Source of the DNA: Squalus acanthias
Lineage: Eukaryota
NCBI GenBank assembly: GCA_030390025.1
Contig: CM059452.1
Location: 7,812,001 to 7,876,000 of the forward strand
Direction: 5' to 3'
DNA length: 64,000 nucleotides
The position numbers and the translations under genes are program-made. A model generated the notes under the pieces. The model ran no database searches, was not told the origin of the DNA, and saw only the letters and a list, made by a program, of their open reading frames with translations. Of the stretch, positions 20,871-58,205 are shown piece by piece; within the stretch, counting starts at the first letter, position 1, and each line of letters opens with the position of its first letter.

Positions 20871-21104
20871 TACTTGGATATGCATTGCTGATGATAAACA
20901 TCTACTGCAGGCGCCAGAGTTTTCTTTTAAACATGATTCATAATTCCACAGACAACAACTTGCACTGACCCAGTGACGTTCACCCAGAGGAGTTTCTGAG
21001 AACAAACCACAAGAGGGCCAAGAGATCAGGAGGAATTAAGGGAGGAAGGAACACAATTACTGCTATATATTCTGAGGAGGTTTTTATGGGAAGTTATGAA
21101 GTTA

Positions 21105-26672: not shown

Positions 26673-26977
26673 AGGAATTGGACACTGAGTAAATGTGGGC
26701 TGTTTGTGGGGAATGTAAATCCTCACACTGATTCAATTTTAAACTAAATATGTTTTGGTTCGACCGTATATAATCCCCAACAGTAAATCGGCAATCAAAG
26801 TCAAAGTATTTTTTGGGAATGGACACAGAACACGGATTATTAATGGTTAATTATATTTTACACAGCTGGACTCAGAGAGGAAACAGAGGAGGAGTCAGGC
26901 TGCTGCTGGGGGAGGCGTGTAAGTCCCAGTCCCCAGCTCCCCCTCTCTCTCACACACACACACAGGGCTCCAGCCAG

Positions 26978-26985
26978 TTTAAATA
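26978..26985 (+). promoter_or_regulatory. TATA-like element of the VH promoter
   Basis: TTTAAATA ~90 bp before the ATG; no octamer seen in the proximal promoter, as expected for shark IgH. Confidence 0.45.
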
Positions 26986-27076
26986 GTGGGGCGGTTCAGC
27001 TCCAAGTTCACAATCAGGAGGCGTTGTTGCGGCGCCGAGACACGTTCCCGAGTCAGTTACACCGAGAGACCGAACG

Positions 27077-27555
27077 ATGGGACTTGCCCCGTGCCTCTGT
27101 TTGTTACTGGCTTGCTTCGCCTGTGAGTATTCCTCACGGCTTTAGTGACACGATAGAAGACAGCTTCAGATATTGTGCTTTTATTTCTATTCATTGATGT
27201 GAATGTTCCACAATGTAATTGCATTTTTTTCATTCACTGACAGATGTCCGGTCCGATATCGTGCTGACTCAGTCGGCTTCTGTGTCGAAGAAGCCCGGAG
27301 AATCTCACAAACTGTCCTGTTCAGTGAGCGGGTTCAGTCTGGACAGCCACCACATGTACTGGATTAAACAAATTCCCGGGAAGGGGCTGGAGTGGCTGCT
27401 TGCTTACAGAAAGCCGTCGGATACCAATTATTATGCGCCTGGAGTCGAAGGCCGGATCATTCCTTCAAGAACAACTTCCACAACCTATATCGAGATCAAT
27501 AATCTGAGAACCGAAGACACCGCCATTTATTACTGTGCAAAAAACAGCAGGGGGG
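27077..27555 (+). CDS. IGHV: Ig heavy-chain leader plus germline-joined VH-D(D) exon
   Basis: Leader 27077-27122 MGLAPCLCLLLACFA; exon 27244-27555 DIVLTQ..LSCSVSGFSL..WIKQIPGKGLEWL..EDTAIYYCAK-NSRG; GT/AG sites and frame intact. Confidence 0.92.
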
Positions 27556-27583
27556 CACAGCAGTTACTGTCAATACAAAAACC
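27556..27583 (+). other. 12-bp-spacer RSS after the VH-D exon
   Basis: CACAGCA 27556-27562 + GTTACTGTCAAT (12 bp) + ACAAAAACC 27575-27583. Confidence 0.92.
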
Positions 27584-27906
27584 CTCAGCACTAATTGAGT
27601 GAGTCTGGGTCAGTGCTCGTTTTCACAATCCAACTGTAGATGCAGTGAAGTCCTATTTGTGTCCAGCACTGTCTACTAGCACAGCTTAATATGGATAAAC
27701 TGTGATAATTAATCATTGATCAGTTGATGATTTGATTAACTGTTCATGGGTTACTCTGTGAAATATAAAACATCAGGTTATTTATAAAGAGTGAAAAGTA
27801 TCCATTAACACATGTATCATTTTATGAAGATCCATCGTGACTTTATTTGTCTCTGGGATGTGAATATTTAAACTAATGTTGGATTTATGTTGTTTTACAC
27901 AGAGCC

Positions 27907-27945
27907 GGTTATTGTGTGACCCAACCCAGGGAATGTAACACTGTG
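27907..27945 (-). other. 23-bp-spacer RSS of JH
   Basis: GGTTATTGT 27907-27915, 23 bp, CACTGTG 27939-27945. Confidence 0.92.
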
Positions 27946-27993
27946 ACTACCTCGACTACTGGGGACAAGGCACCATGGTGACGGTGACTGCAG
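27946..27993 (+). CDS. IGHJ: JH segment
   Basis: YLDYWGQGTMVTVTA followed by the GTAAG donor. Confidence 0.96.
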
Positions 27994-28044
27994 GTAAGAA
28001 ACATTCACTCTTTCAGTAACGGTTATATTTGTGTCTTCAGTTTA

Positions 28045-29320
28045 TATTTCTGTTTATTTCAATATTTCATTCATTCACTGAAACTTGGGTTCGGTGGATT
28101 CTGTATTTAGATTTTTTGCAATGTTTCATTTGATTCTGCTGCAAAGGGATAATAGAATTTAACAGTTCCTTCAGAAAAATATATTGTTGAGGGATTGAGC
28201 CCCTGATTGATGTGATTTGGTGTTTATCTGCTGATGAGACTGTGCGCCTGGGTTACTTTAAATACCCAACGGTTGTTGAATTGTTTGGCGTTTCTGCAAT
28301 ATTTAATCTCGGTGACATCTGGAGGTTGCAGGTTTTCTGCTCAAATGTGAACATTATGTGACTAAAAGTGGTTGAAATAAGATTGTAGGCAGAAAATAGA
28401 AAGCTTTAGCAGTCAAAAATAATCTTAAAATATTTTAATGTATTTTTATTTGTGATAATGAGATTGTCATTTATTAATCTAATGTTCACCTACGGTCATA
28501 TTCAATAAGTGAAATGTTACTGTAATTAATAACTACATAATTAACAAATTTGCATCCAGAACAGATTTAAATTAATATAAATTAAATTATTATAATTTAA
28601 TATCACCCAATATTATTAAAATATGCTATAAAATCAATAGTAAACATGATCCGTCTGCTCACAATTCTGCTGTCATTATTTAGATTTCTGTTTATTTCAA
28701 TAATTAGTTATTTCAGTGATAGGTGCGTTCGGTGGATTCTGTATTGAGATTTTTTCGCAATGTTATATTTGATTCTGCGGAAAGGGTTTATGAATTAAGC
28801 TGCTGCTCCATGTCGAGGGATTCAGCCCCTCAGTGATGTGATTTTCTGCTTATCTGCTGAGTAGAGTTTGTGTCTGTGTTACTCTGAATAACTAGAATTT
28901 GTGAAACTCTTTGGCGTTTCTAGAATGTTTAATCTCGGTGACATCGAGCGGCAGCAGATTTCTGATCTATTGCAAATATTATATGTGTTTAAAACTGTTT
29001 GAAAGAAGATTGTAGGCAGAAAACAGGAAGGTTTTAGAAATCAAAAATCATTGAAACGTATTTTAACACATCTTATTTAAGTGATAATTATGCATTCAAC
29101 TACTAATCTATGGTTTACGGTGCTCATATTTAATGCGTGAAATGTTATTGTAATTACGAACTACATAATTAACAAGTGTTCAGGTTGTAGTTAAATTAAA
29201 TTACTATTAATCAACGATTGTAATGCGATAATATCCCCCAATGTTACTAAAATGTGCTGTAGTATTAATATTAATTTATTAAACATTATTCGCTTTCCAC
29301 AATTCTGCTCTACACTGGGC
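28045..29320 (+). repeat. old tandem duplication (~640-bp period) in the J-C intron
   Basis: TTTCTGTTTATTTCAATA..GTTCGGTGGATTCTGTATT at ~28047 and ~28685 with colinear similarity. Confidence 0.8.
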
Positions 29321-32094
29321 ACAATTAACGTGAGCGGAACATTTTAGAGGCTGGAGACAGTTTTTCATTATGCCTGCAATTATTTCAATAACAACATACT
29401 GATTCCACCGCTGTGTTCAGTTTGATTAGGGGCGCTCAATTACTGGCTGCCTCCTGTCTTACACAGATGAATGTAGGGTTGTATTTCAATACAACATAAA
29501 TCCGTGTTGTAAATTGCAGTTTTTCAATTTAACATATCTGCCGAGTTATTAAATTCATACTGTGCAGTCGAAACCTTGTTACTCTTTCAATATTATTGGT
29601 TGTTTGATGGCGAAACAATTATCACTAAACTAATCAGCAAGATCAAAGATTGAGAGACAGACGCAGGCAAAGAATTGATCATGTGATTCTATTTTAATTC
29701 AAGGAAGGTTCAGACTGCGTAAGGCTGGAGACAGACAAATAACCCATTGAAATTTAAGCAGGTTAATTTAATCACAAAACGTTCATATTATTTTGAATTT
29801 AAAAAAGCATCCTATCTCCCATAGCTCTGCTGTATACGGGATAGAACGATAGGCAGAGTTATGTTTAATTCTTATCAATAGTAAATTGATTCACACAATC
29901 TCTCCTCCATTTGCTCATTAAGTTTCAGTGTCGCAGATGGTCTTAATGAATTGTTCTCCACCAGTTTTACACTGATCATACTGGAGATTATTTTCAATAA
30001 ATAGCGAAATATATTTAATTATTAATTTACGGGCATTGTGTGAATTACGGGAGTAAAATATAAAAGGTTGTCCGTGTTATTAAATAGCGGAGGCTCTGTT
30101 ACTGACTGAAAACTACCCGGGTGGTTTTTAATTCATAAAAATATTTTTTTATAGTTAAGATTGAGAAAAATATTTCAACTCGGGAGCCCAGCTTCAGTAA
30201 ACAGGCGGTGTTACAGCTCATCGGTAGTTAATGAAATGTGAAATCCACTCTGAGAATAGACGGAGTTTATGTTATATCAGAGAGTTCAGAAACATGAAGA
30301 GTTTACAAAGGTGTAGGTAGAGAGCAGGACAGTATTAAAAGTTCGTGATCAGTATTAATTATTCAAATAGGATTTGATTTAAGTAAAAATAATATATTTG
30401 TCTGATTGCATTAAGTATAAATATGATGTTTATTTTTTTAATATTGATGAATTATCATGCCAATTTAATTAAAACCCTAATATATCATAAGTTACCAGGC
30501 AGTAACAGGTTTAAAATTACTATTAATTAATTGTATTAATAAGGCTGGAGATGACAAATAAGACACTGAAATTCGAGCAGATTAATTTAATTACAAAAGT
30601 TACAGGTGCACGTGGTTCTGAGGAGGAAGGGCCAGACAGGCTCGAAGAATATTTTCAATTATACGGTGTAACATCATTTAACATGAATATTAACTTACAA
30701 TATAACATAAGTGCTAATTCATTAAACATAAATGACCTCCCACAATTGCGTTGTATACTGGACAGGATTACAGTTACTGCAAAATCTCAAGGGTTGGAGA
30801 TAATTTTTATTTAAGTTTAAAATTAATTTAGAAACAATACATGTCTTACTCAGCTGTGCTCAGCTCGAGAAGGTGTCGCCGCAGATTTTAATGAATTAAC
30901 TTCGTGGTTTCCCTCGATGATTTTAAAGGTTATATTTAATTAAGAAATTATATCAAATCAGTGGGTAATCGGTTTTCAATGTAAATGTCTCCTGTTTTGT
31001 TAAATTCTTACTCTGTCACTTAGTCCTGTGTTACGGGCAGAAAATTGCTTTGAATGTGAATTATTTCAGTGAAATTAAATCTTACACGGTTTGTAAGATT
31101 GTCGATAGAGAGGGAGAAATGGTTGGATGTTGAAGAGTTTTTTTCATGAATACCAGTTTAATTTCAAAAAACGTGCAGACTTGAGGTGGTCGGAAATTGA
31201 CAAGAGATCAATTAGAAATTGACAGATTGAACAGATCTATCTGCTGAGAGCACGATTGTTGCACCGTTTGTGTCTGTTCTGTTTCTGTGCGCCTGCTCAC
31301 TGTGTGAGAATCAGGAGTCCTCCTGACTGGTTGTAAACCTGCTGATTTGTTCTCTTGTGTTTCAGCAAGTGTAATTTGACTCAATTATTTAAGAAACTTG
31401 TAATCTGTGAGAAACTTGAACGGTTGACTTTAAGGTTGAGGAAGCGCCTCGGAAATGAGATCAGGAACCCAGTTTGTGACATTCAGATGGAGCAGTTCAG
31501 AAACACGGCAGAGAGACTATAGAATGAGCTTTAATCAGTTTCTAACCCGTGCTGTACCTACCCTGGTTATGTTTGACGGGACAGTGTAGAGGGAACTTAT
31601 TTCGGAATCTAAACCTTGCTATACTTGACCCGGAGTTTCAGACTGGGCGGTGGAATAGGATATTTAATCTGAATTCAACCTGACCTTACAGCGCATGACA
31701 AAGTAAATCTGCCTTTGCAGTGCCCTATCGTATCTATCCTGTATCTGACCTGAGAGTGTTTTTGCAACAGTATTGAAGGAACCTGAATAGGCATCTAACT
31801 AATAAGGTGCGAGTGCTCGAGCCAGATATATAAAAATATATCCATTTCTCCGGTGAAACATCCGCGCATTTATTGAGTTTAACCTTCTTTCAAAAAAGTC
31901 TGCCCAATTTATAATGAATTGATAACGTTTAAACATTTTGAGTATCAGATAACGATTGAATGAGATTGTCCTGATCCTGAGCTCACTTTCAGAAAAAACA
32001 GTTTCAGGAAGTGACTGTAACGCTCCAGAAAGCAGCGCCTGTTCTGATCTGATGGGAGGCTGGAAGTTATTTTGAGAATTTAAATCGACAGTGT

Positions 32095-33100
32095 GATGCT
32101 TTACTCTGTATCTAACCCGTGTTGTACCTGCCCTGGGAGTGGTTGATGGGACAGTGGAGAGGGAGCTTTACTCTGTATCTAACCCGTGCTGTACCTGCCC
32201 TGGGAGTGGTTGATGGGACAGTGGAGAGGGAGCTTTACTCTGTATCTAACCTGTGCTGTACCTGCCCTGGGAGTGTTTGATGAGACAGTGTAGAGGGAGC
32301 TTTACTCTGTATCTCACCCGTGCTGTACCTGACCTGGGAGTGTTTGACAGGACAGTGTGGAGGGAGCTTTACTCTGTATCTCACCCGTGCTGTACCTACC
32401 TTGGGAGTGTTTGATGGGGCAGTGTGGAGGGAGCTTTACTCTGTATCTCACCCGTGCTGTACCTGTCCTGAATGCGTTTGATGGGCAATGCACTGGGAGA
32501 TCTAATATCTTATTTACAAGGACGTGGAGTTTGATGGACAACTTCAGTATAGATTTACCTTCTATCTAATCAGTGCTATAGGTGAGCTGGGAAGCTTTAA
32601 TGGGACAGTGTATGGGAAGCTTTACTTTGTATATAATTGTGCTTTACCTAACTTGGACAATTTGAAAGCCCATTTTATGGGGCATTTATTTTGTATCCAA
32701 ACTCTGCTCTACTAGAGCTGGGAATGTTTGATGGGACAATATGGATAAAGTTTTAATCTGCATCTAAACCGAGTATCATTAAACCTCACAGTCTTTGATA
32801 AGGCCGTGTAGATGGAGTTTTGCCCTGTATCTAAATTCTGCTGCATGTGATGCGTGAATATTTGACTGGGCTGTGCATAGCGAGTTGTATTCTCTATCTA
32901 ATCCGCCTTGAATCTTACCTGGCAGTCTAAAAAGATATCTATCTCTTGCTATACTTGACCCGGAGTGCCTGACTGGACAGTGTAGAGGGAGCATCACCCT
33001 GCACCCAACCCTTGCTACACCTGATCTGACAGCCAGGGTAGTGCAGAGCGAGCGTTACTCTATCTTATCCGTGCTGTATCTGACATTATGGTGCTTGGTC
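32095..33100. repeat. 67-bp satellite, decaying rightwards
   Basis: GGGAGCTTTACTCTGTATCTAACCCGTGCTGTACCTGCCCTGGGAGTG.TTGATGGGACAGTG units; inverted copies at 49960-50160. Confidence 0.85.
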
Positions 33101-33799
33101 AGGCAGTCTCCAAGGAAACTTAATCTGCATCTAACCAGTAATCTAGCCAGATATAAAAAAATAAATTGTTCTATTGCCCAGATGGAACAACGCACATTAA
33201 TTGGTGTTAACATTCTTTCTGAAACAAATGCCCAAATTTTAATGAATTTAAATATTTTGATTGTCCAATAATGATTGAATGAGATTGGCCTGATCCTGAG
33301 CTCAATTTCAGAACAAACAGTTTCAGGAAGTGACTGTAACGCTCCAGAAAGCAGCGCCTGTTCTGATCTGATGGGAGGCTGGAAGTTATTTTGACAATTT
33401 AAATGGAGAATGTCGACACTCCCGCTCCAAATAACCATCATGGGAATCTTATGTTTGAAAAACATTATTTGGTTCAATTATATTTTGAAAAGGGACAAAT
33501 ACGGCCGAGTTGCTGTTATTGGTCTGGGTCACAGCACAAGGCTCACAATCACTGGGCTGCATTTCTGTGAATCATTTAAAGAGAAACAGTCAGCCTGCGA
33601 TGGGACGTCATTCACTATGAGCTTTAAGTCTTTATAACAGTAACCGATTGACTAATTCGCGTCAAATTGCTCAGATCCCTTTATTTTAAATATCCTCTTT
33701 CATTATAAGAAACAATAAAAATAGGTCTGATAGAGGTGTTCAACATTATGAAGCGTTTCCTTCCATTAAATCGAGAAGAACTAATTCCGCTGAGTCGTG

Positions 33800-34815
33800 C
33801 AGAATCATAGCACCTTACCGAACAGCAAGAGACCATTCGGCCCGTCTTGCCTGTGCCGGCTCTGATGGAGCTGTCCAATTTCGTCCAACACCCCAGCATT
33901 TTCCTCGTAACCCTGCAAATGAGTTCTCTTCAATACATGTCCAGCTGCCTGGTGCATTCCAGAATTTAACAACCCTCTGTGTGAAAAACATTACCCCAAT
34001 TTCCCCTCTAGATTGCTTGCCAATTATTTTATATCTGTGACCTTTAGTTACCGACCTACTTGCCAGAGGAAAAGGTTTCTGCCTATTTGCTCTGTCAAAA
34101 CCTCCCATAAATTTGAATACCTCTATTATGTCTCCCCTTAAACTTCTCTGCTCTAAGGAGAACATCACAGCTTCTCTAATCTCTCCACATAACTGAAGTT
34201 CCTCATCCCTGGTATAATCCTGTTAAAACTCCTGTATACCCTCTCCAAGGCCTTGTCATCCTTCCTAAATTGTAGTGCCAGAATTGTGCACAATACTCCA
34301 GCTGAGGCCTAACCTGTGATTTGCAAAGGTTTAGCATAACTTCCTTGTTCTTTTATATTCAATGCCCCTATTTACAAAGCCAAGTATCCCATACGCTTTC
34401 TTAACAGCGTTATCAACTTGCCCTGCCACCTTCAACGATTTGTTAATATGCATTCCAGGTCTCTCTGTTCTTGCATCGCCTCAAAATTGTACCATTTAGA
34501 TTATACTGTCTCTCCACGTTGTTACTCCCAAAGTGCATAGCTTCACACTTATCCACATTAAATTGCATCTGCCATGTGCCTCTCTATTTCACCAGTCTGT
34601 GTATTTCCCCCTGAAGTCTGTTACTATCCTGCTCACTATTTGCTACTTGAACATGTTTTGAATCATCTGTGAACTTCGAAATTGTGCTCACTATCCCCAA
34701 GTCCAGGTCATTTTTATATAACAAGAACAACAATGGTCCTAATAGCGATCCATGGGGGACCCACTGCATCATTTTATCCAGTTAGTATAACATCCGATCA
34801 CCACTACTCTCTGCC
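33800..34815 (-). mobile_element. CR1 fragment
   Basis: ORFs 34584-34772 (VPHGSLLGP, KFTDD) and 33815-34168. Confidence 0.88.
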
Positions 34816-35733
34816 TCCTATAGATTTATAATGTTGAAGGATTGCCAATATTAGATATTTAGAAAAGAAACCTGTCCCGATGTTTAGATAATCTTCGGTA
34901 CAAATAGCAACAAGAAGTGACTGTAACGACCCGGAAAGCAGCGCCTGTTCTCACTGGTGGGAGGTCGAAAGGTACTTTGCTAAATGAAATGGAGTATTTA
35001 AAGAGAAACTTCAATAAACCAGATTTTGCAACCGTATTGAACGCGGATTATTAATTGAGTGGGAAGGAGGAGGAAACTCAGGAGACATCCATTCAATAGA
35101 ATGGGATAGAGCACAAATCACAGTGCGTTGAAGTACATCGGTCTTCCTCAAACACGCAGAGAAAGAAATAGATTCTCATCAATCCCGATTTATCTACAGC
35201 TTGAATCTTAGAAACTAGGCAGTGGAAATGTTCTCTGTTGAATTCTGTGTTCAAAAAGTTTTGAGTATTTTCGCTAATTTTATAAGCGCAGATTACGCTG
35301 TTACTTTTGAAGTGTATTCACTGTTGTTTTGTAGGGAAACGCAGCACTCAATTGGCACAGAGCAAATTTCCAAAAACTGCAATGAAATAAATGACCAGAA
35401 GTGACGTTGATTGAGAAATAAATGCTGGCCGAAATAGCAGGAAAACGTCTCTGCTCTTCTATTTTATGAGCCAATGAAAGATAATTTATTGTGGTGTCGT
35501 GAAAAGGTTCTTATTTGTGTAATGTGATAGAGCTCGGGGACAGAGATGTGTGTTCCTGACCAGGGGAACGACAGGTGCTTATGATGGAACTGACAGAAGC
35601 TCAAATGCCGATGTAGCTATTGATCGGAAAATGATGGAATGAGTTTATCCTGTAGTCAAATTTCGAGTTGATTGGTTATGTTATAAACAGGGATTACAGA
35701 GTCTAACTTGTTCAATTGGCCATTCTTTCCCAG

Positions 35734-36033
35734 CGACACAGTCTCCTCCCAGCCTCTACGCCCTGCTCTCCTCCTGTGAACAACCCAACACCGGCGGCCC
35801 CGTCACCTACGGCTGTTTGGCGATGGATTACTTCCCGGAAATCACCAGCCTTTCCTGGAGCAAAGATAAAGAGCCGATCACCACTGGATTGAAGACCTAC
35901 CCGTCAGTGCTCAACAAGAAGGGAACCTACACCCTGAGCAGCCAGTTAACCATCACCGAGTCAGAGGTGGGGAGCAGCACAATCTACTGCCAGGTTCGAG
36001 GAGGTGGGTCGGTCTGGGGAATCAAAATACGAG
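35734..36033 (+). CDS. IGHM: IgM Cmu1 exon
   Basis: [64 protein letters not shown]; phase-1 AG/GT; resembles shark Cmu1. Confidence 0.95.
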
Positions 36034-36079
36034 GTTAGTATTGGGGGATACAGGGGGGGGAAACTGAGAAAGTGAGGCG

Positions 36080-39000
36080 TTATGTTCAACTTTTACAGAA
36101 ATTTGGTTAGTCCACACTTGGAGTATTGTGAACAGTTTTGGACTCCATATCACGCGTAATGTACTGTGCAAAGTTCTGATCCCCATATCGCACTTAGTGT
36201 ACTGTGTACAGTTCTGGTCTCCATATTACAATTAGTGTACTGTGCACAGTTCTGGTCTCCATATCACACTTAGTGTACTGTGCACAGTTCTGGTCTCCAT
36301 ATCACACTTAGTGTACTGTGCACAGTTCTGGTCTGCATATTATACTTAGTGTACTGTGCACAGTTCTGGTCTCCATATTACGCTTAGTATACTGTGCACA
36401 GTTCCAGTCTCCATATCACACTTAGTGTACTGTGCACAGTTCTGGTCTCCATATTACACTTAGTGTACTTTGCACAGTTCTGTTCTCCATATTACACTTA
36501 GTGTACTGTGCACAGTTCTGGTCTCCATATTACACTTAGTGTACTGTGCACAGTTCCCGTCTCCATATTACACTTAGTTTACTGTGCACAGTTCTGGTCT
36601 CCATATTAAAATTAGTGTACTGTGCACAGTTCTGGCATCCATATTACACTCAGTGTACTATGCACAGTTCCAGTCTCCATATTACACTTAGTGTACTGTG
36701 CACAGTTCTGGTCTCCATATTACACTTAGTGTACTATGCACAGTTCCAGTCTCCATATTACACTTAGTGTACTGTGCACACTACTGGTCTCCACATCACA
36801 CTTAGTGTACTGTGCGCAGTTCTGGTCTCCATATTTCACTTAGTGTACTGTGCACAGTTCTGGCATCCATATTACACTCAGTGTACTATGCACAGTTCCA
36901 GTCTCCATATTACACTTAGTGTACTGTGCACGGTTCTGGTCTCCATATTACACTTAGTGTACTATGCACAGTTCCAGTCTCCATATTACACTTAGTGTAC
37001 TGTGCACACTACTGGTCTCCACATCACACTTAGTGTACTGTGCACAGTTCTGGTCTCCATATTACACTTAGTATACTGTGCACAGTTCCAGTCTCCATAT
37101 CACACTTAGTGTACTGTGCACAGTTCTGGTCTCCTTATTACACTTAGTGTACTGTGCTCAGTTCTGGTCTCTTTATTACACTTAGTGTACTGTGCACAGT
37201 TCCCGTCTCCATATTACACTTAGTTTACTGTGCACAGTTCCCGTCTCCATATTACACTTAGTGTACTGTGCACAGTTCTGTTCTCCATATTACACTTAGT
37301 GTACTTTGCACAGTTCTGTTCTCCATATTACACTTAGTGTACTGTGCACAGTTCTGGTCTCCATATTACACTTAGTGTACTGTGCACAGTTCCCGTCTCC
37401 ATATTACACTTAGTTTACTGTGCACAGTTCCCGTCTCCATATTACACTTAGTGTACTGTGAACAGTTCTGATCTCCATATTACACTTAGTGTACTGTGCA
37501 CAGTTCCGTTCTCCATATCACACTTAGTGTACTGTGCACAGTTATATTCTCCATATTACACTTAGTGTGCTGTTTGCAGTTCTAGTCTCCATATCACACT
37601 TAGTGTACTGTGCACAGTTCTGGTCTCCATATCACAATTAGTGTACTGTGCACAGTTCCAGTCTCCATATCACACTTAGTGTCCTGTGCTCAGTTCTGGT
37701 CTCCATATTACACTTAGTGTACTGTGCACAGTTCCAGTCTCCATATCACAATTAGTTTACTGTGCACAGTTCCGGTCTCCATATCACACTTAGTGTACTG
37801 TGCGCAGTTCTGGTCTCCATATCACACTTAGTGTCCTGCGCTCAGTTCTGGTCTCCATATTACACTTAGTGTACTGTGCACAGTTCCAGTCTCCATATCA
37901 CACTTAGTGTACTGTGCACAGTTCCTGTTCTCCATATTACACTTAGTGTACTGTGCACAGTTCCAGTCTCCATATCACACTTAGTGTACTGTGCACAGTT
38001 CCTGTTCTCCATATTACACATAGTGTACTGTGCACAGTTCTGTTCTCCATATTACACTTAGTGTGCTGTGCACAGTTCTATTCTCCATATTACACTTCGT
38101 GTACTGAGCACAGTTCGTTTCTCCATATTACACTTAGCGTACTGTGCGTAGTTATGTTCTCCATATTACACTTAGTGTGCTGTGCACAGTTCTGTTCTCC
38201 ATATTACATTTAGTGTACTGTGCACAGTTCTGTTCTCCATATTACACTTAGTGTACTGTGCACAGTTCTGTTCTCCATATTACACTTAGTGTACTGTGCA
38301 CAGTTCTGTTCTCCATATTACACTTAGTGTACTATGCATAGTTCTATTCTCCATATTACACTTAGTGTGCTGTGCACAGTTCTGTTCTCCATATTACATT
38401 TAGTGTACTGTGCACAGTTCCAGTCTCCATATCACACTTAGTATACTGTGCACAGTTCCGGTCTCCATATCACACTTAGTGTACTGTGCACAGTTCCAGT
38501 CAGCATATCACACTTAGTGTACTGTGCATAGAATCATAGAATCATAGAATCATAGAAACATAAAAGATGGGAGCAGGAGTAGGCCATTCGGCCCCTCTAG
38601 CCTGCTCCGCCATTCAATGCGATCATGGCTGATCATCCAAATTCAGTACCCTATCCCTGCTTTCTCCCCATATCCCTTGATCCCTTTAGCCTTAAGAAAT
38701 ATATCCAACTCCTTCTTGAATCTATTTAATGAATTGGCCTCTACTGCCTTCTGTGGCAGAGAATTCCACAGGTTCACCACTCTCTGGGTGAAGAAATTCC
38801 TCCTCATTTATGTCCTAAATGGCTTACCCCTTATCCTTAGACTGTGACCCCTGGTTCTGGACTCCCCGACCATCGGGAACATCCTTCCTGCATCTAGTTT
38901 GTCCTGTCCTGTCAGAATTTTATAAATTTCAATGAGATCCCCTCTCATTCTTCTAAACTCCAGCGAGTATAAGCCCAATCGACCCAATCTCTCTTCATAC

Positions 39001-40485
39001 GTGATTCCATCCATCCCAGGTATCAGACTTCTGAATCTTCGCTGAACTCCTTCCATGGCAAGAACATCCTTCCTCAGATAAGGCGACCAAAACTGCACAC
39101 AGTACTCAAGGTGTGGTCTCACTACTGGTCTCCATATCACACGTGGTGTACTGTGCACAGTTCTGGTCTCCACATTACACTTAGTGCACTGTGTACAGTT
39201 CTAGTCTCCTTATTACACTGAATGTACTGTGCACAGTTCCAGTCTCCATATTGCACTTAGGTTACTGTGCACAGTTGTGTTCTCCACATCACACTTACTG
39301 TATTGTGCACAGTTCTAGTCTCCATATCACACTTAGTGTACTGTGTACAGATCTGTTCTCCATATTACACTTAGTGTACTGTGTACAGTTCTGTTCTCCA
39401 TGTTACACTTAGTGTACTGTGCACAGTTCTGTTCTCCATATTACACTTAGTGTACTGTGTACAGTTCTGTTCTCCATATCACTCTTAGTGTACTGTGCAC
39501 AGTTCTGTTCTCCATATTATACTTAGTGTACTGTGCACAGTTCTGTTCTCCATATTACACTTAGTGTACTGTGCACAGTTCTATTCTCCATATTACACTT
39601 AGTGTACTGTGTACAGTTCTGTTCTCCATATCGCTCTTAGTGAACTGTGTAAAGTTCCAGTCTATATATTACATTTAGTGTGTTGTGCTCAGTTCTGTTC
39701 TCCATATTATACTTAGTGTACTGTGCACAGTTCTGGTCTCCATATTACACTTGGTGTACTGTGCACAGTTCTGGTCTCCATATTACACTTAGTGTACTGT
39801 GCACAGCTCTGGTCTCCATATTACACTTAGTATATTGTGCACAGTTTTGGTCTCCATATTACACTTAGTGTACTGTGCACAGTTCTGGTCTCCATATTAC
39901 ACTTAGTGTACCGTGCACAGTTCTGGTCTGTATATCACACTTAGTGTACTGTGCACAGTTCTGGTCTCCATATCACACTTGATGTACTGATTACATTTCT
40001 GGCCTCTATATCACATTTACAATACTGTGCACAGTTCTGGTCTCCACATCATACTTAGAGTATTGTGAACAGTTGTAGTCTCCATATCACACTTAGTGTA
40101 CACTGCACTGCTCTGCTGTCCATATCGCACTTCGTGTACTGTGCACAATTCTGGCCGCCATATCACACTTAGTGTACACTACACAGTTCTGCTGTCCATT
40201 TCGCACTTCGTGTACTGTGCACAATTCTGGCCTCCATATTACACTTAGTGTACTGTGCACAGTTCTGATCTCCATTTCATAGTTAGAGTAGTGAGTAGCG
40301 TTCGGGTCTCCATATCACACTTGGAGTACTGTGTAGAGTTCTGGTCGCCATATCACACTTACTTTATTATGCCGAGTTCCGGTCTCCATATCACACTTAG
40401 AGTACTGTGCACAGTTCTGGTCTCCATCGCACACTTCCTGTTCTGTGTAGAGTTCCGGTCTCCATATTACACTTAGAATACAGTG
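36080..40485 (+). repeat. 38-bp minisatellite (~100 units) derived from CR1 ORF2
   Basis: unit TTACACTTAGTGTACTGTGCACAGTTCTGGTCTCCATA; begins with a CR1 piece encoding ..LVSPHLEYCEQFWTPY. Confidence 0.92.
38528..39123 (-). mobile_element. CR1 insertion inside the minisatellite
   Basis: ORF 38808-39173; (CATAGAAT)n tail; same subfamily as 1113-2362. Confidence 0.92.
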
Positions 40486-40618
40486 CACAGTTATGCTCTC
40501 TGGAGGTGCCAGGTTAGTGTGAGCCTGACAGTAAAGGTCCTGTTAAAATATAAGGACATGTTGCATTTCTTAATCTTTTATTTTATAAGCAATGTTATTA
40601 ACATATGTTCTTTTGAAG

Positions 40619-40936
40619 GTCCTAACCAGGACATCGTCCATCCAACTGTGATCCTCACCCGGAGTTCCAGTGAAGAAATCACCAGCAGCAGGTCTGCAAC
40701 CGCCGTGTGTTCAATCATCGATTTCCGTCCAAAGTCACTGACCGTGAATTGGCTGAAGAATGGGCAGCTCATGGATTCGGATTTCGTCACTTCTCCCGTC
40801 TTTGAAGTGAACGGGAACTTCTCGGCGACCAGTCGGCTGACATTCACCGCCGGGGATTGGTTTACCGGCTCGGTCTATACCTGCCAGGTCTCTCATCAAG
40901 GGGTCACCCAAAGCCGAAACATCTCCAGATCTCTGG
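40619..40936 (+). CDS. IGHM: IgM Cmu2 exon
   Basis: [58 protein letters not shown]; AG/GT in phase. Confidence 0.95.
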
Positions 40937-41249
40937 GTAAGTGACACAATCCCGAGCAGGCCCAGATCATTTTGAGCGCTGATCTCAGTCAGGACTTTTA
41001 TTGGAATTAGTAAAAAGCACTGAACTATTTCTCATTTCCAATCACACAGTTTGTGTTTCCTTCCGATGTCAGTGTTGACTCAGGGTTCCTCACGGTTCAG
41101 CATTCAATAAACTTCGCTAAACGTTTCCCTCAGCTGTGATGTCAGACAGTGAGTGAGGTGTCCTTAGTTTCATGTTTACCCTGAGAAAGCTCTATTTCTA
41201 ATTTACAATCATGCTGTTTGTGTTTTCTTCCGATATAAAATAAAAGAAA

Positions 41250-41665
41250 GAACTACCTTTACATAGCGCCTTTCCCGACCTCCGGACGTCCCAAAGCGCT
41301 TTACCGCCAAGGAAGTAATTCCTGAAATGTGGTCACTGTTGTAATGTAGAAATCGCGGCGGCCAATTTGCAGACAGTAAAGTTCCACAAGCAGCAATGTG
41401 ATAATGACCAGACAATCTTATTATTTAGTGATGTTTGTTCAGGGATAAATATTGGTCAGGACACCTGGGAGATTTCCCCTGCTCCTCCTCGAAATAGTGC
41501 CATGGGATCTTTTACGTCCACCTGAGAGGTCTGTTTAAAGTCTCATGCGAAAGACGGCACCTCCGACAGAGTAGCGCTCCCTCAGTGCTGCACTGGGAGA
41601 GTCAATTTACATCTTTTGTTCACGTATTTGGAGTGAGACTTGAACCCACAATCTTCTGAATCAGG
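41250..41665 (-). mobile_element. tRNA-derived SINE (DeuSINE/SacSINE1-like)
   Basis: B-box GGTTCAAGTC on the minus strand near 41640; body shared with the 26400-26672 copy. Confidence 0.7.
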
Positions 41666-41854
41666 ATTCCTCACGGTTCATGATTCCATAACCTCGCCAA
41701 AGAAGGTTTCCCTCTGCTCTGATGTCAGTCAGTGAGTGAGGTGTCCTCGGTCTCAGGTTTATCCTGAGTTGGCTGATCATATTCTGAGCGGCAGTAGGTT
41801 TCTGGAACCCTTTACTTTTAACGGTCTCGAGACCCACTGCGAGAAAGGGCATCT

Positions 41855-42395
41855 TCCCTATTTAGAGAACTGCATTCAATTCTGGGCTCCACACATCCGG
41901 AAGGATATATTGGCCTTGGAGGGGCTGCAGTGCAGATTTAATAGAATGATATCGGGAAAAGTGTTAAATAATGAGGACAGGTTGCACATAATAGGCTTCT
42001 ATTCCTTTGATTATGGAAGATCTAATTGAGGTGTTTAAGTTGATAAATGGAATTGATAGGGGAGATAGAGAGAAACTATTTCCTCTGGTGCGGGAGTCCA
42101 GAACAAGGGGAATAACCTTAAAATTAGAACTGAGATGTTCAGGGGTGATGTCAGGAAGCACTTCTTCACACAAAGGACAGTGGAAATCTGGAATTCTCTC
42201 ACTGCAAAAAAGCTGTTGAGGCTGGGGGTCAATTGCAAATTTCAAACCTGAGGTTGATAGATTTTTGGGAGGCAAGGTATCAAGGGTTACAGAAACAAGG
42301 CGTGTTGATAGTGTTGAGGTGCAGATCAGCCATGATCTCATTAAATGGCGGAACAGGCTGGATGGGCCGAATGGCCTGCTCCTGTTCCCATGTTG
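41855..42395 (+). mobile_element. CR1 3' fragment
   Basis: LENCIQFWAPHIRKDILALE, DLIEVFK, RTRG motifs. Confidence 0.85.
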
Positions 42396-42731
42396 CTATT
42401 ACTGCCCTGCAGTCATATTTCCTCTGACTCTCTCACCAGACATTTTAAGTGCTCATTAATGACAGAAATAAACAAACTACTTCAAATCGGCATTACACAT
42501 TATTCTCCAGCACAAAAGACCCCTTGGAACTCCATTCTCCGGAGCTTTCACTTCTCCTCTGACGGGGCTGCAACTGGTTCCCGCACATTTTCATCGCCCC
42601 AAAAATCGCAACAAGACACCAGAAAATTAACTTTGTTTCCAGTTGCACCTAAAATCCTGGGTTTCATTTGACACTCGTTTTGAACCAGTGCAATTTTCGT
42701 GTAGAGCTCTTGACCCTGAGGGCGGAGCCAT

Positions 42732-43492
42732 GGGCCAGAAATTCAGCTTTCAGGCTTCCTGCGGGTGCAAGCATCGTGCGCGTACTTGCCTACCGTGCCT
42801 GCAGTTGTGCTTTGGGCCCACGAGGACTTCGGGTCCTGGGCCTCCTGCAGCTGCCGGCGCGCAGTGCTTGTGTATCCCAGGGGCGCAGTTAGTTCGAAGC
42901 GTCCCCTGGGATCACGTGGGCCATGGAGAGCCAATCCTAGCAGGTCATTTTCATTCATAGATTTGACAGGGAGACCTGACAAATCTATGAATAGAGATCG
43001 GCCCCAAAACCACACTTAAACTTCAAATAATTTTTTTTTAAATTACATTTTTAAAATAACTATAAGTTAAATAAATTAACTACCTTAAACAAAAATTTAA
43101 ATATTTGAAAAAATTAATTATACTTTGTAACGGTGCTAAAAATAAACTTACCTTAAGTTAAAGTATCTAAAAAAGATAAACCTGTTGAAAACATTTTTAA
43201 ATTGTAATTAATTAACCACTTACCTTGTTAAAAACAGGCCTTGCGCCTCCTTTTTAAAAGCGCAGCTTCTTTATACTTACCTTCCCGGAGAAACCTGAAA
43301 AAAAACCTAACTTCGTTGCGTGCGCGCAGCCTCTCCCGCGCACAGGTTCGACTTCTGAACCCCTCCCTTCAGGGGAAAGAAAGTTCCGGTTTCTCGCGCA
43401 TGCGCAGTGCATGCAGAAAACCGGCACTTCAAATGGCCTTACGGGTGAGTATACAGTGCGTACTCACCCGACAACAGCCGAATTTCTGGCCC
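42732..43492. mobile_element. MITE with 17-bp TIRs (PIF/Harbinger-like)
   Basis: GGGCCAGAAATTCAGCT ... AGCCGAATTTCTGGCCC (16/17 match), AT-rich core. Confidence 0.75.
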
Positions 43493-43853
43493 AATATAAT
43501 CAGCGGGAATGGATGGGCACAAGGATCTATACACGGGTTCAAAGGAGCAAGGGATTTCAGGAAGAGCGCTCTTCAGTGCGTAATATAATTGCGCCCGAAT
43601 TTATTCATTTTTTTACGCCGGGTATTTGCTTCACAGCCATTACAGGAGGCTCTGGGAGCAAATACACAGGAAATGTTAAAGAGTCTCCCGGAATCGTTGT
43701 CAATTCTTTGTCCTTCCAATGCGATGGTGTTTATGCAACACCCAGAGGTTAATCTCTCAAAGGTGATTTATTCTCGTTGAGAGAGTGAAGGCTGAATGCT
43801 TGTGTCCTGATTCTGAAGATGAAGCATTGCTTGATTTTAATTTCTGTTCACAG

Positions 43854-44162
43854 ATGATCCCTTATGCGGCGATCCAGAAATCACTATTCCGCAACCGTCA
43901 CTAGAACATGTCTTACTGGAGGCGACGGTGACCTTAACCTGCGTCGTGTCTGGTGCGCCTTATGGAGTAAACGTGTCCTGGATCCGAGAGAAGGAGACTT
44001 TGAAATCAGAGATTGCCGTCCAACCCGGAGAGGCGCCCAACAGCGTGATCAGCAACTTAAACATCTCGACACAGGCCTGGCTGAGAGGGGATGAGTTCTA
44101 CTGCGTGGTGAGCCATCAGGATATGCCGTCTCCTATAAGAGATTCCATCCACAAGGAAAAGG
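43854..44162 (+). CDS. IGHM: IgM Cmu3 exon
   Basis: [65 protein letters not shown]. Confidence 0.95.
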
Positions 44163-44309
44163 GTGAGCGGTGAGATTGTAGCAATAAGTGAGACACTGTG
44201 ACTATTTCCGGTGCTTGTGCACGGCCCAATTCGTTCTATTCAGTGTTTTAATGGACTGCTCTGATAATTCAATGGCTATTGCCACTAACTATACCCTCTG
44301 CGACCCGAG

Positions 44310-44475
44310 ATGATGCATTTAAAGGGAAGCTGGATAAGTCAATGAGGGAAAAAGGAATAGAAGGATATGTTATGAGGGTTAGATGAAGTAAGGTGGGAGG
44401 AGTCTCGTGTGGAGCATTAGCAGCAGCATTCACCAGTTGGACCGAATGGTCTGTTTCTATGATGTAAATTCTATA
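44310..44475 (+). mobile_element. short CR1 3' fragment
   Basis: AFKGKLDK coding end plus a CR1-like 3' UTR. Confidence 0.6.
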
Positions 44476-44681
44476 AAAAATTTCCTGTCCAACTCTTCAA
44501 GCTCCCAGAGAGAAGGATTGTATCCCCCTCTGCTCCGGGCTGGAAAACCGGACAGGACACAGAGGGGGAAAGTGAATCGTTCAAAATTCAGTGCAAAGCA
44601 CATTTCTCTCACATCTAACCGCCGGTTTCATTGTCTCTGGAATTCTCCAGTTTATTGACCTTTATTGTAATTGTTTTGCAG

Positions 44682-45073
44682 TTGAAGATCCGCGGGAACC
44701 GTCCGTGTCTGTCCTCCTGCCGCCGGCAGAAGAAGTCTCCGCTCAGAGGTTCGTGACCCTCACCTGCTTAGTGAGAGGTTTCTCCCCCCGAGAGATCTTC
44801 GTCAAGTGGACCGTCAATGACAAGCCGGTGAATTCCGGCAACTACAAGAACACCGAGGTGATGGCGGAGAACGGCAGCAGTTCCTTCTTCATGTACAGCC
44901 TGTTATCAATTGCAGCGGAGGAGTGGGCCAGCGGCGCATCTTACACCTGTGTGGTGGGACATGAAGCGATCCCCTTGAAGATCATCAACAGAACGGTTAA
45001 TAAATCCAGCGGTAAACCCAGTTTTGTGAACATTTCCCTTGTTCTGATGGACACCGTCAATTCTTGTCAATGA
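44682..45073 (+). CDS. IGHM: IgM Cmu4 exon with secretory tailpiece
   Basis: [67 protein letters not shown]; internal donor G|GTAAA at 45011/45012 for the membrane form. Confidence 0.97.
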
Positions 45074-45101
45074 GAATCTCTCGATTGCATTTCAGTTGTT
45101 G

Positions 45102-45117
45102 AATAAAAACCAATAAA
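45102..45117 (+). terminator. polyadenylation signals for secreted mu
   Basis: AATAAA at 45102 and 45112, just after the stop codon. Confidence 0.75.
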
Positions 45118-45496
45118 GGCCTTTTCTTCCAATCGTCAGTTACACACACAGCCGCTCGATTAATTTTGTTTCCCATTTTTGCCAAGCGGAGGGCATTTGC
45201 TGGTCTCGGACCCAAGGCTTGTACAGCCAGCGCTCCCAGCTCAGATACACCACGGGTTAGAGACAGACTGAAGCTCTATCAAGACAGGATTCCTCAAAGT
45301 CACTTCAGCAACTTTCCTCCCGCTGAGGGAAATCAAAAAGTTCCCATTTCAGACAAACAAACGCAGCACATTTAGATCTCGGTGTCTCCGTTTCTCGTGC
45401 TGTCCATCCCTTCAGAATTGGGGCCAGTTATATTTTGCAGCATCGCAACCTCTGGGATACGATATAAGGCAACTCACGAACACGAACTGTCACCCC

Positions 45497-47140
45497 TACT
45501 CCCCCAGCAGAGAGAGGGGAAAGGGCAATTGTTAACCCACTGTACCTCCCACACCCCCACCAGAGAGAGGGGAAAGGGTAATTGTTAACCCACTGTACCC
45601 CCACTCCCCCACCAGAGAGAGGGGAAAGGGTAATTGTTAACCCACTGTACCTCCCACACCCCACCAGAGAGAGGGGAAAGGGCAATTGTTAACCCACAGT
45701 ACCCCACTCCCCCACCAGAGAGAGGAGAAATGGCAATTGTTAACCCACTGTACCCCCACTCGCCCACCAGAGAGAGGGGAAAGGGCAATTGTTAACCCAC
45801 TGTATCCCCACTCCCCCACCAGAGAGAGGGGAAAGGGCGATTGTTAGCCCACTGTACCCCCCACTCCCCCACCAGAGAGAGGGGAAAGGGCAATTGTTAA
45901 CACACTGTACCTCCCACTCCCCCACCAGAGAGAGGGGAAAGGGCAATTGTTAACCCGCTGTACCCCCACTCCCCCACCAGAGAGAGGGGAAAGGGCAATT
46001 GTTAACCCGCTGTACCTCCCACTCCCCCACCAGAGAGAGGGGATAGGGCAATTGTTAACCTGCTGTGCCTCCCACTCCCCCATCAGAGAGAGTGGAAAAG
46101 GGAATTGTTAACCCACTGTACCCCCACTCCCCCACCAGAGAGAGGGGAAAGGGTAATTGTTAACCCACTGTACCTCCCACTCCCCCACCAGAGAGAGGGG
46201 AAAGGGCAATTGTTAACCCGCTGTACCTCCCACTCCCCCCACCAGAGAGAGGGGAATGGGCAATTGTTAACCCGCTCTACCTCCCACTCCCCCATCAGAG
46301 AGAGGGGAAAGGGCAATTGTTAACCCACTGTACCCCCACTCCCCCACCAGAGAGAGGGGAAAGAGCAATTGTTAACCCACTGTACCTTCACTCCCCCACC
46401 AGAGAGAGGGGAAAGGGCAATTGCTAACCCACTGTACCCCCACTCCCCCACCAGAGAGAGGGGAAAGGGCAATTGTTAACCCACTGTACCTCCACTCCCC
46501 CACCAGAGAGAGGGGAAAGGACAATTGTTAACCCACTGTACCTCCCACTCCCCCACCAGAGAGAGGGGAAAGGACAATTGTCAACCCACTATACCCCCAC
46601 TCGCCCACCAGAGAGAGGGGAAAGGGCAATTGCTAACCCACTATACCCCCACTCGCCCACCAGAGAGAGGGGAAAGGTCAATTGTTAACCCACTGTACCC
46701 CCACTCCTCCACCAGAGAGGGGAAAGGTCAATTGTTAACACACTGTCCCTCCCACTCCCCCACCAGAGAGGAGAAAGGGCAATTGTTGGCCCACTGTACA
46801 CCCCACTCCCCCACCAGAGAGAGGGGAAAGGGCAATTGTTAACCCACTGTACCCCCACTCCCCCACCAGAGAGCGGGGAAAGAGCAATTATTAACCCACT
46901 GTACCTCCCACTCCCCCACCAGAGAGAGGGGAAAGGGCAATTGTTAACCCACTGTACCCCCACTCCCCCACCAGAGAGAGGGGAAAGGGCAATTGTTAAC
47001 CCACTGTACCTCCCACTCCCCCACCAGAGAGAGGGGAAAGGGCAATTGTTAACCCACTGTACCTCCACTCCCCCACCAGAGAGAGGGGAAAGGGCAATTG
47101 TAAACCCACTGTACCCCCCACTCCCCACCAGAGAGAGGGC
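45497..47140. repeat. ~52-54-bp C-rich minisatellite (~31 units)
   Basis: CCACCAGAGAGAGGGGAAAGGGCAATTGTTAACCCACTGTACCCCCACTCCC units. Confidence 0.92.
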
Positions 47141-47474
47141 AGGTGAACCAATCTCTATTATATGAACTCAGCTGCCATTAGTAAAAAGTCAGCTTCAACT
47201 CACAGTCTAAAAACGTTAAAATTGCCGGATGAAAATCATATTTTAAAATAAATATTTATTGAACAACTTATCTTTAACTAGTGTTTGGGGTAAATCTGTC
47301 CCTGCTATTCATAAACTAACACATTTAATTGTAATAGTCCAAATTTGAACTGGTGATTGAATCCTCTGCGGGTTTCTCATGGTTGTGTCCCTGATGGTTC
47401 TGAGGCCCATCGGCTGACGTCACATTGCGTCTCACACAGAACACATTTACACAGAGCGGGGAAGAATGCGTGTA

Positions 47475-48210
47475 AAGTGAGTGTGTGTGTGTTTATGTGT
47501 AAGTGCGTTTGCGATTTTGTGTAAGTGTGTGTGTTTTCTGTAAGTGCACACTTACACATTAACACACACAGACTTATACATAAACACACGCATTAACACA
47601 TTGACAGAGAATATTACACATACCCAGAAAATAATACACACCCTCATTGTCAGACCCACTTATTGGTACTCTCTGAAACTTTCAACAGTACCGGAAATAC
47701 ACACGCGCACACCCTTAAACAAAACACACACAAACACATGCATTAACACACACACACTTACACACCCATAAACTCTCACATCAACACAAACATACACACG
47801 CACAAACACACACACTCAGAAACACACACAATTGCACAGGAACACTCACCCGCTTACACCTAAACAGACACAAACACTTACACATAACCATAAACCTACA
47901 CATAAACACACACATGGACGCACATACACAAAAACAAACACACACTTAAACATAAACACACTTACAAATAAACTTACACACAAACACACACATAAAATTA
48001 CAAATAAACACACACACTTATACAAAGACTTACACATAAAAATGCACAAACTGACAAAAATGCACACAGACTTACACAAACACACACACAATTACACAAA
48101 CACACACACACACTTACACAGCAACACACACATTAACACTCAAACACAGACTAAAACAAAACAAGAGATTGTCAGACACACATACACAAACATGAATGCG
48201 CACAAAAAAC
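47475..48210. repeat. degenerate (TG)/(CA) low-complexity tract
   Basis: direct reading. Confidence 0.85.
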
Positions 48211-48836
48211 CTTAGGCTATAGAGGAATGTAGAATTAAAATGCACCTTTTGAACGAACAGAGTTTCCAACGATTGTTCTGAATAAATAATTCCTGAAACC
48301 ATAACATCTCACATTTCTCTATTATGCTCCTACACATACACTGAATCAATGTTCTTGTTGGAAACTGATACAAGTTAATTATGTTCGGAGCATTGCCATA
48401 ACAAATAAATATACAAGATTATAAATCACATCTGATCTCTTACCCAGCCCCCTTGACCGTCTCCAAATAAGTAGCTATCTAAACCTATCGTTAAAATAAT
48501 CGATATCAATCAGTAAACTTCCCTCGATATTTCATCATATTATTTCCGAACAATAGATTGTACGAAATTGATGCAAAATCAATGAGCCTGTGTCATTGAA
48601 GAAAAAACTCGTTTTTTCCAACACGGACTATAGGAGGATCATAAAGGAAGAGCGACTGTGGAGTTTGGAACAGAGATAGATTGCTGAGAGTGATTAACTT
48701 AACACAAGATATACATTGAAAATTCAATTAGAGAAAAAACTAATACCTTAAGGAAAAGAAGAGAATATATAATAATAATATGATATCTTGGATTAATAAA
48801 GGATCTGAATATATTTCCTCCTCTACATCCCCGTAG

Positions 48837-48964
48837 ATTCCTCAGACCACATTTTGATTGAAGACTATGAGGAAGAGAGCGGCAACATCTGGACAACCGC
48901 TTCCACATTCATCATCCTGTTCTTCCTGAGCATGTCCTACAGCGCTGCCGTCACTCTAGTGAAG
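48837..48964 (+). CDS. IGHM: IgM TM1 exon
   Basis: DSSDHILIEDYEEESGNIWTTASTFIILFFLSMSYSAAVTLVK; conserved antigen-receptor TM pattern; AG/GT. Confidence 0.95.
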
Positions 48965-49107
48965 GTGAGAAGATTCAATCCACTCACACTTCGATCTGAC
49001 TGAAGCGGTTTGACAAATCTTTAAAAGTTTAATTGATAAAAAAAACCCTGAGATAAATGCCCCAAACCACTAAATCTCTGCTTCATTCTTTTATCCCTCT
49101 TTTACAG

Positions 49108-49116
49108 ATCAAATGA
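49108..49116 (+). CDS. IGHM: IgM TM2 exon (IK*)
   Basis: pyrimidine tract + CAG|ATC AAA TGA; AATAAA at 49180, 49228 and 49572. Confidence 0.88.
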   Translation: MK

Positions 49117-52677: not shown

Positions 52678-52773
52678 GGGACGTTGAAAAGTTACAATTT
52701 ATGCTCATTGAGGTTCCTTCCAGATATTGGGCTTCTGTTGGCCACTGCTTGAAGGAGTCTCCAGAACTCAGTT
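52678..52773 (-). pseudogene. TCR V fragment (V8), 5' part of a V1 paralogue
   Basis: cag|AA CTG.. LSSGDSFKQWPTEAQYLEGTSMSINCNFST, then abrupt end. Confidence 0.8.
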
Positions 52774-52814
52774 CTGCAGAAAACATTCCTGGTTTCCCAT
52801 GGAAACAGAACGAA

Positions 52815-58162: not shown

Positions 58163-58205
58163 TAAAATGATGTGCTGTTATCTGTCTAATTCTAAACCAG
58201 ACACC

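Follow-up and report, generated by a model that had tools for sequence, protein, structure and literature searches.

How complete is an antibody heavy-chain gene that lies between T-cell receptor (TCR)-type variable segments, and what would such a position mean for either kind of receptor? The question is raised by a 64,000-nt stretch of the Squalus acanthias genome (assembly GCA_030390025.1, contig CM059452.1, positions 7,812,001 to 7,876,000 of the forward strand; referred to here as the window, and containing zero N across its 64 kb), for which an earlier note had claimed a complete IgM heavy-chain gene nested inside a TCR alpha/delta V array. The reading preferred here, with a probability of roughly 0.8, is that this gene is one of many elasmobranch IgM miniclusters, structurally complete and with V and both D segments joined in the germline, and that it stands in a region of interleaved immunoglobulin heavy-chain (IgH) clusters and TCR V segments of the "antigen receptor complex" (AgRC) type, in which the V segments have largely decayed. 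The anatomy, the recombination signal sequence (RSS) types, the V classes and the pseudogene status on which this reading is built are matters of direct observation.

The gene occupies positions 27077-49116 on the plus strand and comprises a leader, a VH, one JH, four constant exons (Cmu1-4) with a secretory tail, and two membrane exons (TM1 and TM2). Its parts, together with a TATA-like box ahead of the leader, are as follows.

26978-26986, plus strand: TATA-like box, lying some 90 nt before the leader ATG.
27077-27122, plus strand: leader exon, with the ATG at 27077 and the donor GTGAGT.
27244-27555, plus strand: VH exon with a germline-joined, D-derived end (Pfam V-set, 1e-13).
27946-27993, plus strand: JH coding segment with the donor GTAAGA, the sole J in the window.
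35734-36033, plus strand: Cmu1 exon, 300 nt (Pfam C1-set, 1.9e-13).
40619-40936, plus strand: Cmu2 exon, 318 nt (Pfam C1-set, 6.3e-19).
43854-44162, plus strand: Cmu3 exon, 309 nt (Pfam C1-set, 3e-09).
44682-45073, plus strand: Cmu4 exon with the secretory tailpiece, stop codon at 45071-45073 and AATAAA at 45102 (Pfam C1-set, 2.5e-23).
After 45011, plus strand: membrane-form donor (GT) inside Cmu4.
48837-48964, plus strand: TM1 exon, with an acidic spacer and the transmembrane segment.
49108-49116, plus strand: TM2 exon, two codons and a stop, with AATAAA at 49180.

The frames of these exons are all open, the acceptors are all AG and the donors all GT, and the splice phases are consistent, being phase 1 throughout and phase 0 at the TM1/TM2 junction. 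Protein searches against Pfam, solved structures and homologues were run exon by exon and not with a spliced heavy-chain model. Residues 6-128 of Cmu4 with its tail align with solved IgM mu chains, their best solved relatives, at an E value of ~1e-51, while for the VH exon 36 of 36 candidate homologues passed and every informative name among them was Ig heavy variable, the closest relative being a protein of the catshark Scyliorhinus torazame with 80% identity over 97% of the query. The features of an elasmobranch IgM minicluster are thus present, namely a split leader with an Ig-heavy VH, one JH with its RSS and donor, four C1-set exons, a mu-type secretory tail, and an internal Cmu4 donor leading to TM1 and TM2. 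Neither a further C-type exon nor a second J motif was found in the window, the J scan covering six frames. Identity as IgW or IgNAR was considered and rejected on the basis of the four C exons and the mu tail. The claim of a complete gene with all its named exons is therefore confirmed by the exon map, phases, splice sites and Pfam domains, and so is the claim of an entire IgM gene as opposed to a stray VH, since it has its own J, four C exons, a secretory tail and membrane exons.

The state of the V-J region defines the subtype of this cluster, in which V and J are ~390 nt apart and are flanked by signals of two different spacer lengths.

27556-27583, plus strand: 12-spacer RSS behind the V(DD) exon, with heptamer CACAGCA (5/7), 12 nt, and nonamer ACAAAAACC (9/9).
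27907-27945, plus strand: 23-spacer RSS of JH, with nonamer at 27907-27915 (8/9), 23 nt, and heptamer at 27939-27945 (7/7).

Between the Cys-Ala codons (27534-27539) and the heptamer, the VH exon has 16 additional nucleotides, and these, in combination with the 12-spacer RSS that follows them and the 23-spacer RSS of JH, give the anatomy of V, D1 and D2 joined in the germline. An RSS scan found, at the threshold used, no RSS-flanked element between 27556 and 27945 that could be a separate D segment, and the two RSS-flanked D segments of an IgM minicluster are accordingly missing between V and J. This absence, on which the earlier note was silent, fits the known germline-joined VD-J subtype and does not exclude the gene from the IgM minicluster family.

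A counterpart of the unjoined state was seen in sequencing reads. Four runs were compared with positions 26950-28050, namely X1 and X2 (DNA), X8 (RNA by guess) and X21 (single-cell RNA, raw reads). In X1, a 986-nt contig matches 27550-27673 with 2 mismatches and shares the downstream flank; upstream of 27550 the same contig holds an unjoined D coding stretch preceded by its own 5' heptamer. In a second X1 contig, the match to the V stops at 27540 and gives way to a V end of conventional type with its heptamer. A paralogue or a related animal thus has the unjoined, ancestral layout. A D-derived V end, the 3' RSS of the last D and this unjoined counterpart, all features of a germline-joined cluster, are present; the V-D-D join is probably germline and not somatic in origin. 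As far as the available text of PMC5192425 goes, VD-J clusters have been described as a class in cartilaginous fish and germline joining is common in sharks. Separately, X2, which otherwise behaves as genomic DNA, contains a fully V-D-J-joined form running from 27539 to 27946 with 16 letters between and an untrimmed J start, at a depth of 96.6, which is probably another germline-joined IgM gene elsewhere in that organism.

Under the preferred reading, the cluster would thus be of the partly germline-joined VD-J type, with V, D1 and D2 already fused before any rearrangement, and a single RAG-mediated join would be left to be made. That join, in deletional orientation, would bring the 12-spacer RSS to the 23-spacer RSS of JH across the ~390 nt and yield a VDJ exon, which would be spliced to Cmu1-4. 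The predicted heavy chain would then end either at the secretory tail or, by way of the internal Cmu4 donor, at TM1/TM2. The TCR-type V segments around the gene would form a mixed and largely decayed set in both orientations, with retroelement fragments between them.

The earlier count of seven V segments upstream and five downstream of the IgM gene was borne out by tblastn with the window's own V exons, the matches lying at approximately 2988 (minus), 4701, 6118, 8594 and 12189 (plus), and 16038 and 17535 (minus) on the upstream side, and at approximately 52762 (minus), 58315, 60143 and 61398 (plus), and 62233 (minus) on the downstream side. The twelve segments read as follows.

2536-2988, minus strand: TCR-type V pseudogene with a frameshift and a 24-spacer RSS at 2578, of the same family as the 52679-52762 fragment.
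4701-5067, plus strand: TCR-type V pseudogene with two in-frame stops and a 22-spacer RSS at 5030.
6009-6485, plus strand: intact TCR-alpha-like V with ATG at 6009, GTGAGT donor, open exon, and a 23-spacer RSS at 6447 with a perfect nonamer.
8594-8880, plus strand: TCR-type V pseudogene with a diverged 3' end, the second Cys gone, and RSS not found.
12189-12545, plus strand: TCR-type V pseudogene with a frameshift near 12464 and a 23-spacer RSS at 12507.
15696-16038, minus strand: TCR-type V pseudogene with a frameshift, the first Cys replaced, and a 23-spacer RSS at 15734.
17081-17563, minus strand: intact TCR-alpha-like V with ATG at 17563, GTAAGT donor, open exon, and a 23-spacer RSS at 17119.
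52679-52762, minus strand: 5' fragment of a TCR-type V, adjoining retroelement sequence.
58206-58677, plus strand: intact TCR-alpha-like V with ATG at 58206, GTGAGT donor, open exon, and a 24-spacer RSS at 58638 with a perfect nonamer.
60143-60265, plus strand: TCR-type V fragment with stops.
61554-61880, plus strand: open V exon of a distinct family, with a 23-spacer RSS at 61842, a weak nonamer (6/9), and a phase-compatible leader not found.
62006-62233, minus strand: TCR-type V pseudogene fragment with stops, 81% identical in DNA to the V at 6009-6485.

The three intact V segments (6009-6485, 17081-17563 and 58206-58677) have an AG acceptor in addition to the leader, GT donor and open exon, and in blastp against all 47 fetched proteins they score best with the TCR-alpha set. 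For the exon at 58351-58635, 10 proteins match among 17 candidates, of which two bear the name TCR alpha V and none an Ig name, the others being three called "Ig-like domain", one "hypothetical" and four unnamed. The V at 61554-61880 is about equally far from both classes, with 44.7 bits against Ig heavy V and 41.6 against the TCR-alpha set, and a homologue search with 61554-61841 gave a single unnamed protein among 3 candidates, at 57% identity; this segment may be a delta-type or "intermediate" V in the sense of Flajnik et al. 2025. Classification by solved structures was dropped, the whole-chain ranking being dominated by scFv and diabody constructs that left TCR and Ig V unseparated. A reading of the flanking V as Ig light-chain (IgL) clusters was rejected as well, as J or C is absent near them.

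The description of the gene as lying inside a TCR V array holds in part. TRAV/TRDV-type V segments with 23-spacer RSS, as expected of such an array, are represented by the three intact TCR-alpha-like V with their 23/24-spacer RSS, and an RSS with a 22-24-nt spacer is present on 8 of the 12 flanking V. In a functional TCR alpha/delta array most V would be potentially functional; here four of the 12 have open frames and the other eight have suffered frameshifts, stops or truncation, the strands are mixed (seven plus, five minus), and neither TCR D nor TCR J or C was found in the 64-kb window, so that linkage to these elements is not visible within it. The decay of eight segments and the presence of both orientations had gone without mention in the earlier note. 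"TCR V array with IgM inside" and "TCR-type V exons scattered between IgM clusters" are equally good descriptions of what is seen, the latter being the wording of Flajnik et al. 2025.

The alternative that keeps most ground is that the flanking V are relics or orphons copied along with IgM clusters and serving no TCR, the region being an IgM array littered with dead TCR-type V; this is possible, though doubtful. The dead majority, the mixed strands, the missing TCR J, D and C and the reverse-transcriptase fragments of retroelements interspersed between the V segments would all be expected of such a region. So would the recurrence of the same V families on both sides of the IgM cluster, where blastn pairs 2783-2907 with 52684-52809 (90% over 126 nt) and 5976-6485 with 58173-58677 (80%), both families keeping the same order and orientation on either side, which suggests that a block of V was duplicated long ago. 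The blastn comparison of upstream with downstream sequence returned V-gene-sized and retroelement matches only, and no duplicated block that is both long and collinear. Against the relic explanation, leader, splice sites, open frame and a good 23/24-spacer RSS have all survived in three V, two of them with perfect nonamers, and the retention of all these parts argues for purifying selection. Also against it, four species were reported to have their IgH clusters near TCR alpha/delta on a shared scaffold (PMC12227049, available text). On the preferred reading, the intact flanking V would be used by TCR alpha/delta.

The read evidence for use of the IgM cluster itself is mixed. In X8, depth is confined to the V exon from 27246 and to J, with zero on the leader and its intron as well as on the spacer between V and J, and the run behaves as cDNA; its contigs pass from 27993 into Cmu1-start sequence one letter off that of the window. 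X8 also contains mismatch-free contigs over CDR1 (27318-27401, depth 124) and CDR2 (27386-27503, depth 133), whereas framework bins common to other clusters reach depths of 30,000 to 85,000. Mismatch-free contigs at so modest a depth imply that transcripts of this V, or of a copy identical to it, make up a small part of the total. Three letters specific to this V end are found in one X8 joint, which leaves V at 27543 and has a depth of 33.6. In X21, reads splice the leader end onto 27244, but they derive from paralogous V genes.

Several results, in addition to the missing TCR D, J and C, count against the preferred reading. Each run contains less than half of the sampled words of 27077-27990 (at best 0.39 in X1 and 0.36 in X2), and the source animal is probably absent from them. 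All covering X1, X8 and X21 reads or contigs differ from the window at 27269, as do all covering X1 and X2 reads or contigs at 27620, and these constant mismatches indicate that the runs appear not to come from the assembled animal or copy. Among the V-to-J joints listed (15 of 17), none carries the cluster's own letters 27544-27555. Of the 15 listed, the 14 that come from X8 leave V at 27535-27543 with diverse inserts, which measure 14-40 nt in the 11 X8 inserts listed (of 26 inserts recorded in all), and they are ordinary V-D-D-J joins of other clusters. X8 has a mean depth of 2.6 over 27542-27578 as compared with 85,046 in the preceding bin, and the X21 reads diverge at CDR1 and leave no depth over 27357-27467. 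Finally, a scan of the 370 nt ahead of the VH leader gave no perfect octamer, only a match at 26713 with a single mismatch.

These results bear most directly on a second alternative, namely that the gene is silent, open yet unused for antibodies, or that its V-D-D join is a somatic rearrangement captured by the assembly. The failure of any listed joint in the four runs to contain the V-D-D end, the lack of a perfect octamer, and the difference of all reads at 27269 speak for it. Nevertheless, it is judged improbable: the 22 kb show no damage to frames or splice sites, X8 is free of mismatches over both CDR1 and CDR2 and shows J spliced to the start of Cmu1, germline joining is common in sharks (PMC5192425, in its available part), and lymphocytes would contribute only a minor part of the DNA in most samples used for assembly. 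There is a weak indication that this exact cluster is expressed, and on the preferred reading the cluster would be used by B cells. As regards the earlier expectation, "antibody-competent" stands for the structure and not for use, inasmuch as the V-D-D end joined to J is not among the joints listed from the four runs.

A more elaborate interpretation takes the interleaving to be functional and policed by RSS spacers, with germline-joined clusters selected as "insulated" antibody genes and with a TCR-type V block plus an IgM cluster as the unit of amplification. Where a cluster is conventional, chimeras of Ig and TCR could form in both directions, D1 with its 12-spacer RSS being open to joining by the 23-spacer RSS of a nearby TCR-type V, and a TCR delta D to joining by the 23-spacer RSS of VH. 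Joining of V-D-D in the germline would strip every RSS usable by flanking TCR V or by TCR delta D and leave the internal 12/23 pair in place. This interpretation in its entirety is considered unlikely.

The weakest alternative, an assembly artefact in which a multi-copy IgM cluster was misplaced among TCR V segments, can draw on the multi-copy nature of IgM clusters and V families and on summed X2 word depths of 0 to ~2,900 along the stretch, but it is highly improbable given a 64-kb sequence free of N and the same pattern reported independently in four chromosome-level assemblies (PMC12227049, available text).

Aside from the coding parts, the window holds several repeats, among them the following within the IgM gene.

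36114-40500, strand not assigned: 38-nt tandem array of ~116 copies with 78% matches, filling most of the Cmu1-Cmu2 intron (~4.4 kb).

This array is broken by a retroelement fragment at ~38529-39122, and its 38-nt unit holds a 12-nt palindrome that resembles two RSS heptamers fused head to head. In the J-Cmu1 intron, a 67-nt tandem repeat (5.8 copies, 92% matches) occupies 32098-32485. A 52/105-nt tandem array at 45486-47139, placed after the secretory end of Cmu4 and before TM1, contains ~32 copies of 52 nt with 92% matches and is followed by a CA-rich low-complexity tract at ~47400-48200. Retroelement reverse-transcriptase fragments were located at 297-2405, 20200-22387 and 53584-58094, with Pfam RVT_1 on 3 of 6 open reading frames tested; some copies are 93-95% alike and inverted (1123-2216 with 57068-58164), and one stops ~110 nt ahead of the leader of the intact V at 58206. 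A whole-window repeat search, whose output was dominated by the 38-nt array, revealed no repeats bracketing the IgM cluster as a mark of insertion, and the inverted repeats that it found in the window are retroelement copies.

If contiguity is real, the window provides base-level detail for an architecture so far described at the scale of gene models, showing which TCR-type V are alive or dead, the RSS and orientation of each, and a germline V-D-D cluster with one join left. Should an intact flanking V be used by TCR alpha/delta, the IgM gene would be deleted or inverted in T cells, although such deletion or inversion by TCR rearrangement, which the earlier note had foreseen, follows only if an intact V is used and a TCR J-C lies on the same chromosome. 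Lineage-specific control of the cluster, likewise put forward in that note, would be a further prediction. The part played by RSS spacer types in limiting chimeric Ig/TCR joining also becomes a testable question. As a discovery, the locus adds little, as linkage and interspersion were published in 2025 (PMC12227049, according to its available text).

The nearest published architecture is that of Flajnik et al. 2025 (Sci Adv, PMC12227049), in which, in the available text, the AgRC has TCR alpha/delta-type V exons between IgH clusters, the V(D)JC of each isotype are grouped together, and some V are intermediate between TCR and Ig; in four species with chromosome-level assemblies, one scaffold carries both TCR alpha/delta and, near it, the IgH clusters. 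The window likewise contains an IgM cluster, TCR-type V around it and possibly an intermediate V (61554-61880), and since a 2025 publication already described this interleaving in sharks and rays, it is one more example, which reduces the surprise that had been claimed for it. The difference is one of resolution, in that the published description covers four species at gene-model scale whereas the window was read at base level; RSS types, the pseudogene fraction and the germline-joined state beside TCR V are not given in the available text of PMC12227049. This very cluster may be listed, by scaffold coordinates, in Table S1 of that paper. No base-level annotation of IgM clusters among shark TCR V was found in the literature searched beyond PMC12227049, and a stingray genome paper contained nothing on arrangement.

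In mammals, TCR delta is nested inside the V-to-J span of TCR alpha. The likeness to the window is that an inner receptor gene lies within the V region of another and could be deleted by the outer rearrangement; in the window, by contrast, the inner gene belongs to another cell lineage and the outer J and C lie outside the 64 kb.

A further relative is the class of TAILV or VH-delta segments, Ig-like V of TCR delta loci (Deiss et al. 2019, as cited in the available text of PMC12227049). The VH-type V of the window is also physically among TCR alpha/delta-type V, but it differs in having its own JH ~390 nt away, its own Cmu gene and a 12-spacer RSS. For these reasons, assignment as a TAILV, that is, a VH without its own Ig J and C that joins TCR delta D-J, was rejected. 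A conventional unjoined VH carries a 23-spacer RSS, whereas this VH carries a 12-spacer one, and it is the conventional 23-spacer VH that has been reported to join TCR delta D. The 5' RSS of TCR delta D has a 12-nt spacer in mammals, and if the same spacer applies here, the 12/23 rule implies that this VH should not join that D. By the same rule the flanking V with 23-spacer RSS cannot join JH, whose RSS also has a 23-nt spacer.

The closest match overall is the VD-J-type IgM minicluster. Like the members of that class (PMC5192425, available text), the gene has D already fused to V and a single RSS pair left, and it brings together one VH, one JH, four Cmu exons, a secretory tail and two membrane exons within ~22 kb. 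In comparison with the elasmobranch IgM minicluster nothing essential differs, and what the window adds to it is the 4.4-kb array of 38-nt units in the Cmu1-Cmu2 intron.

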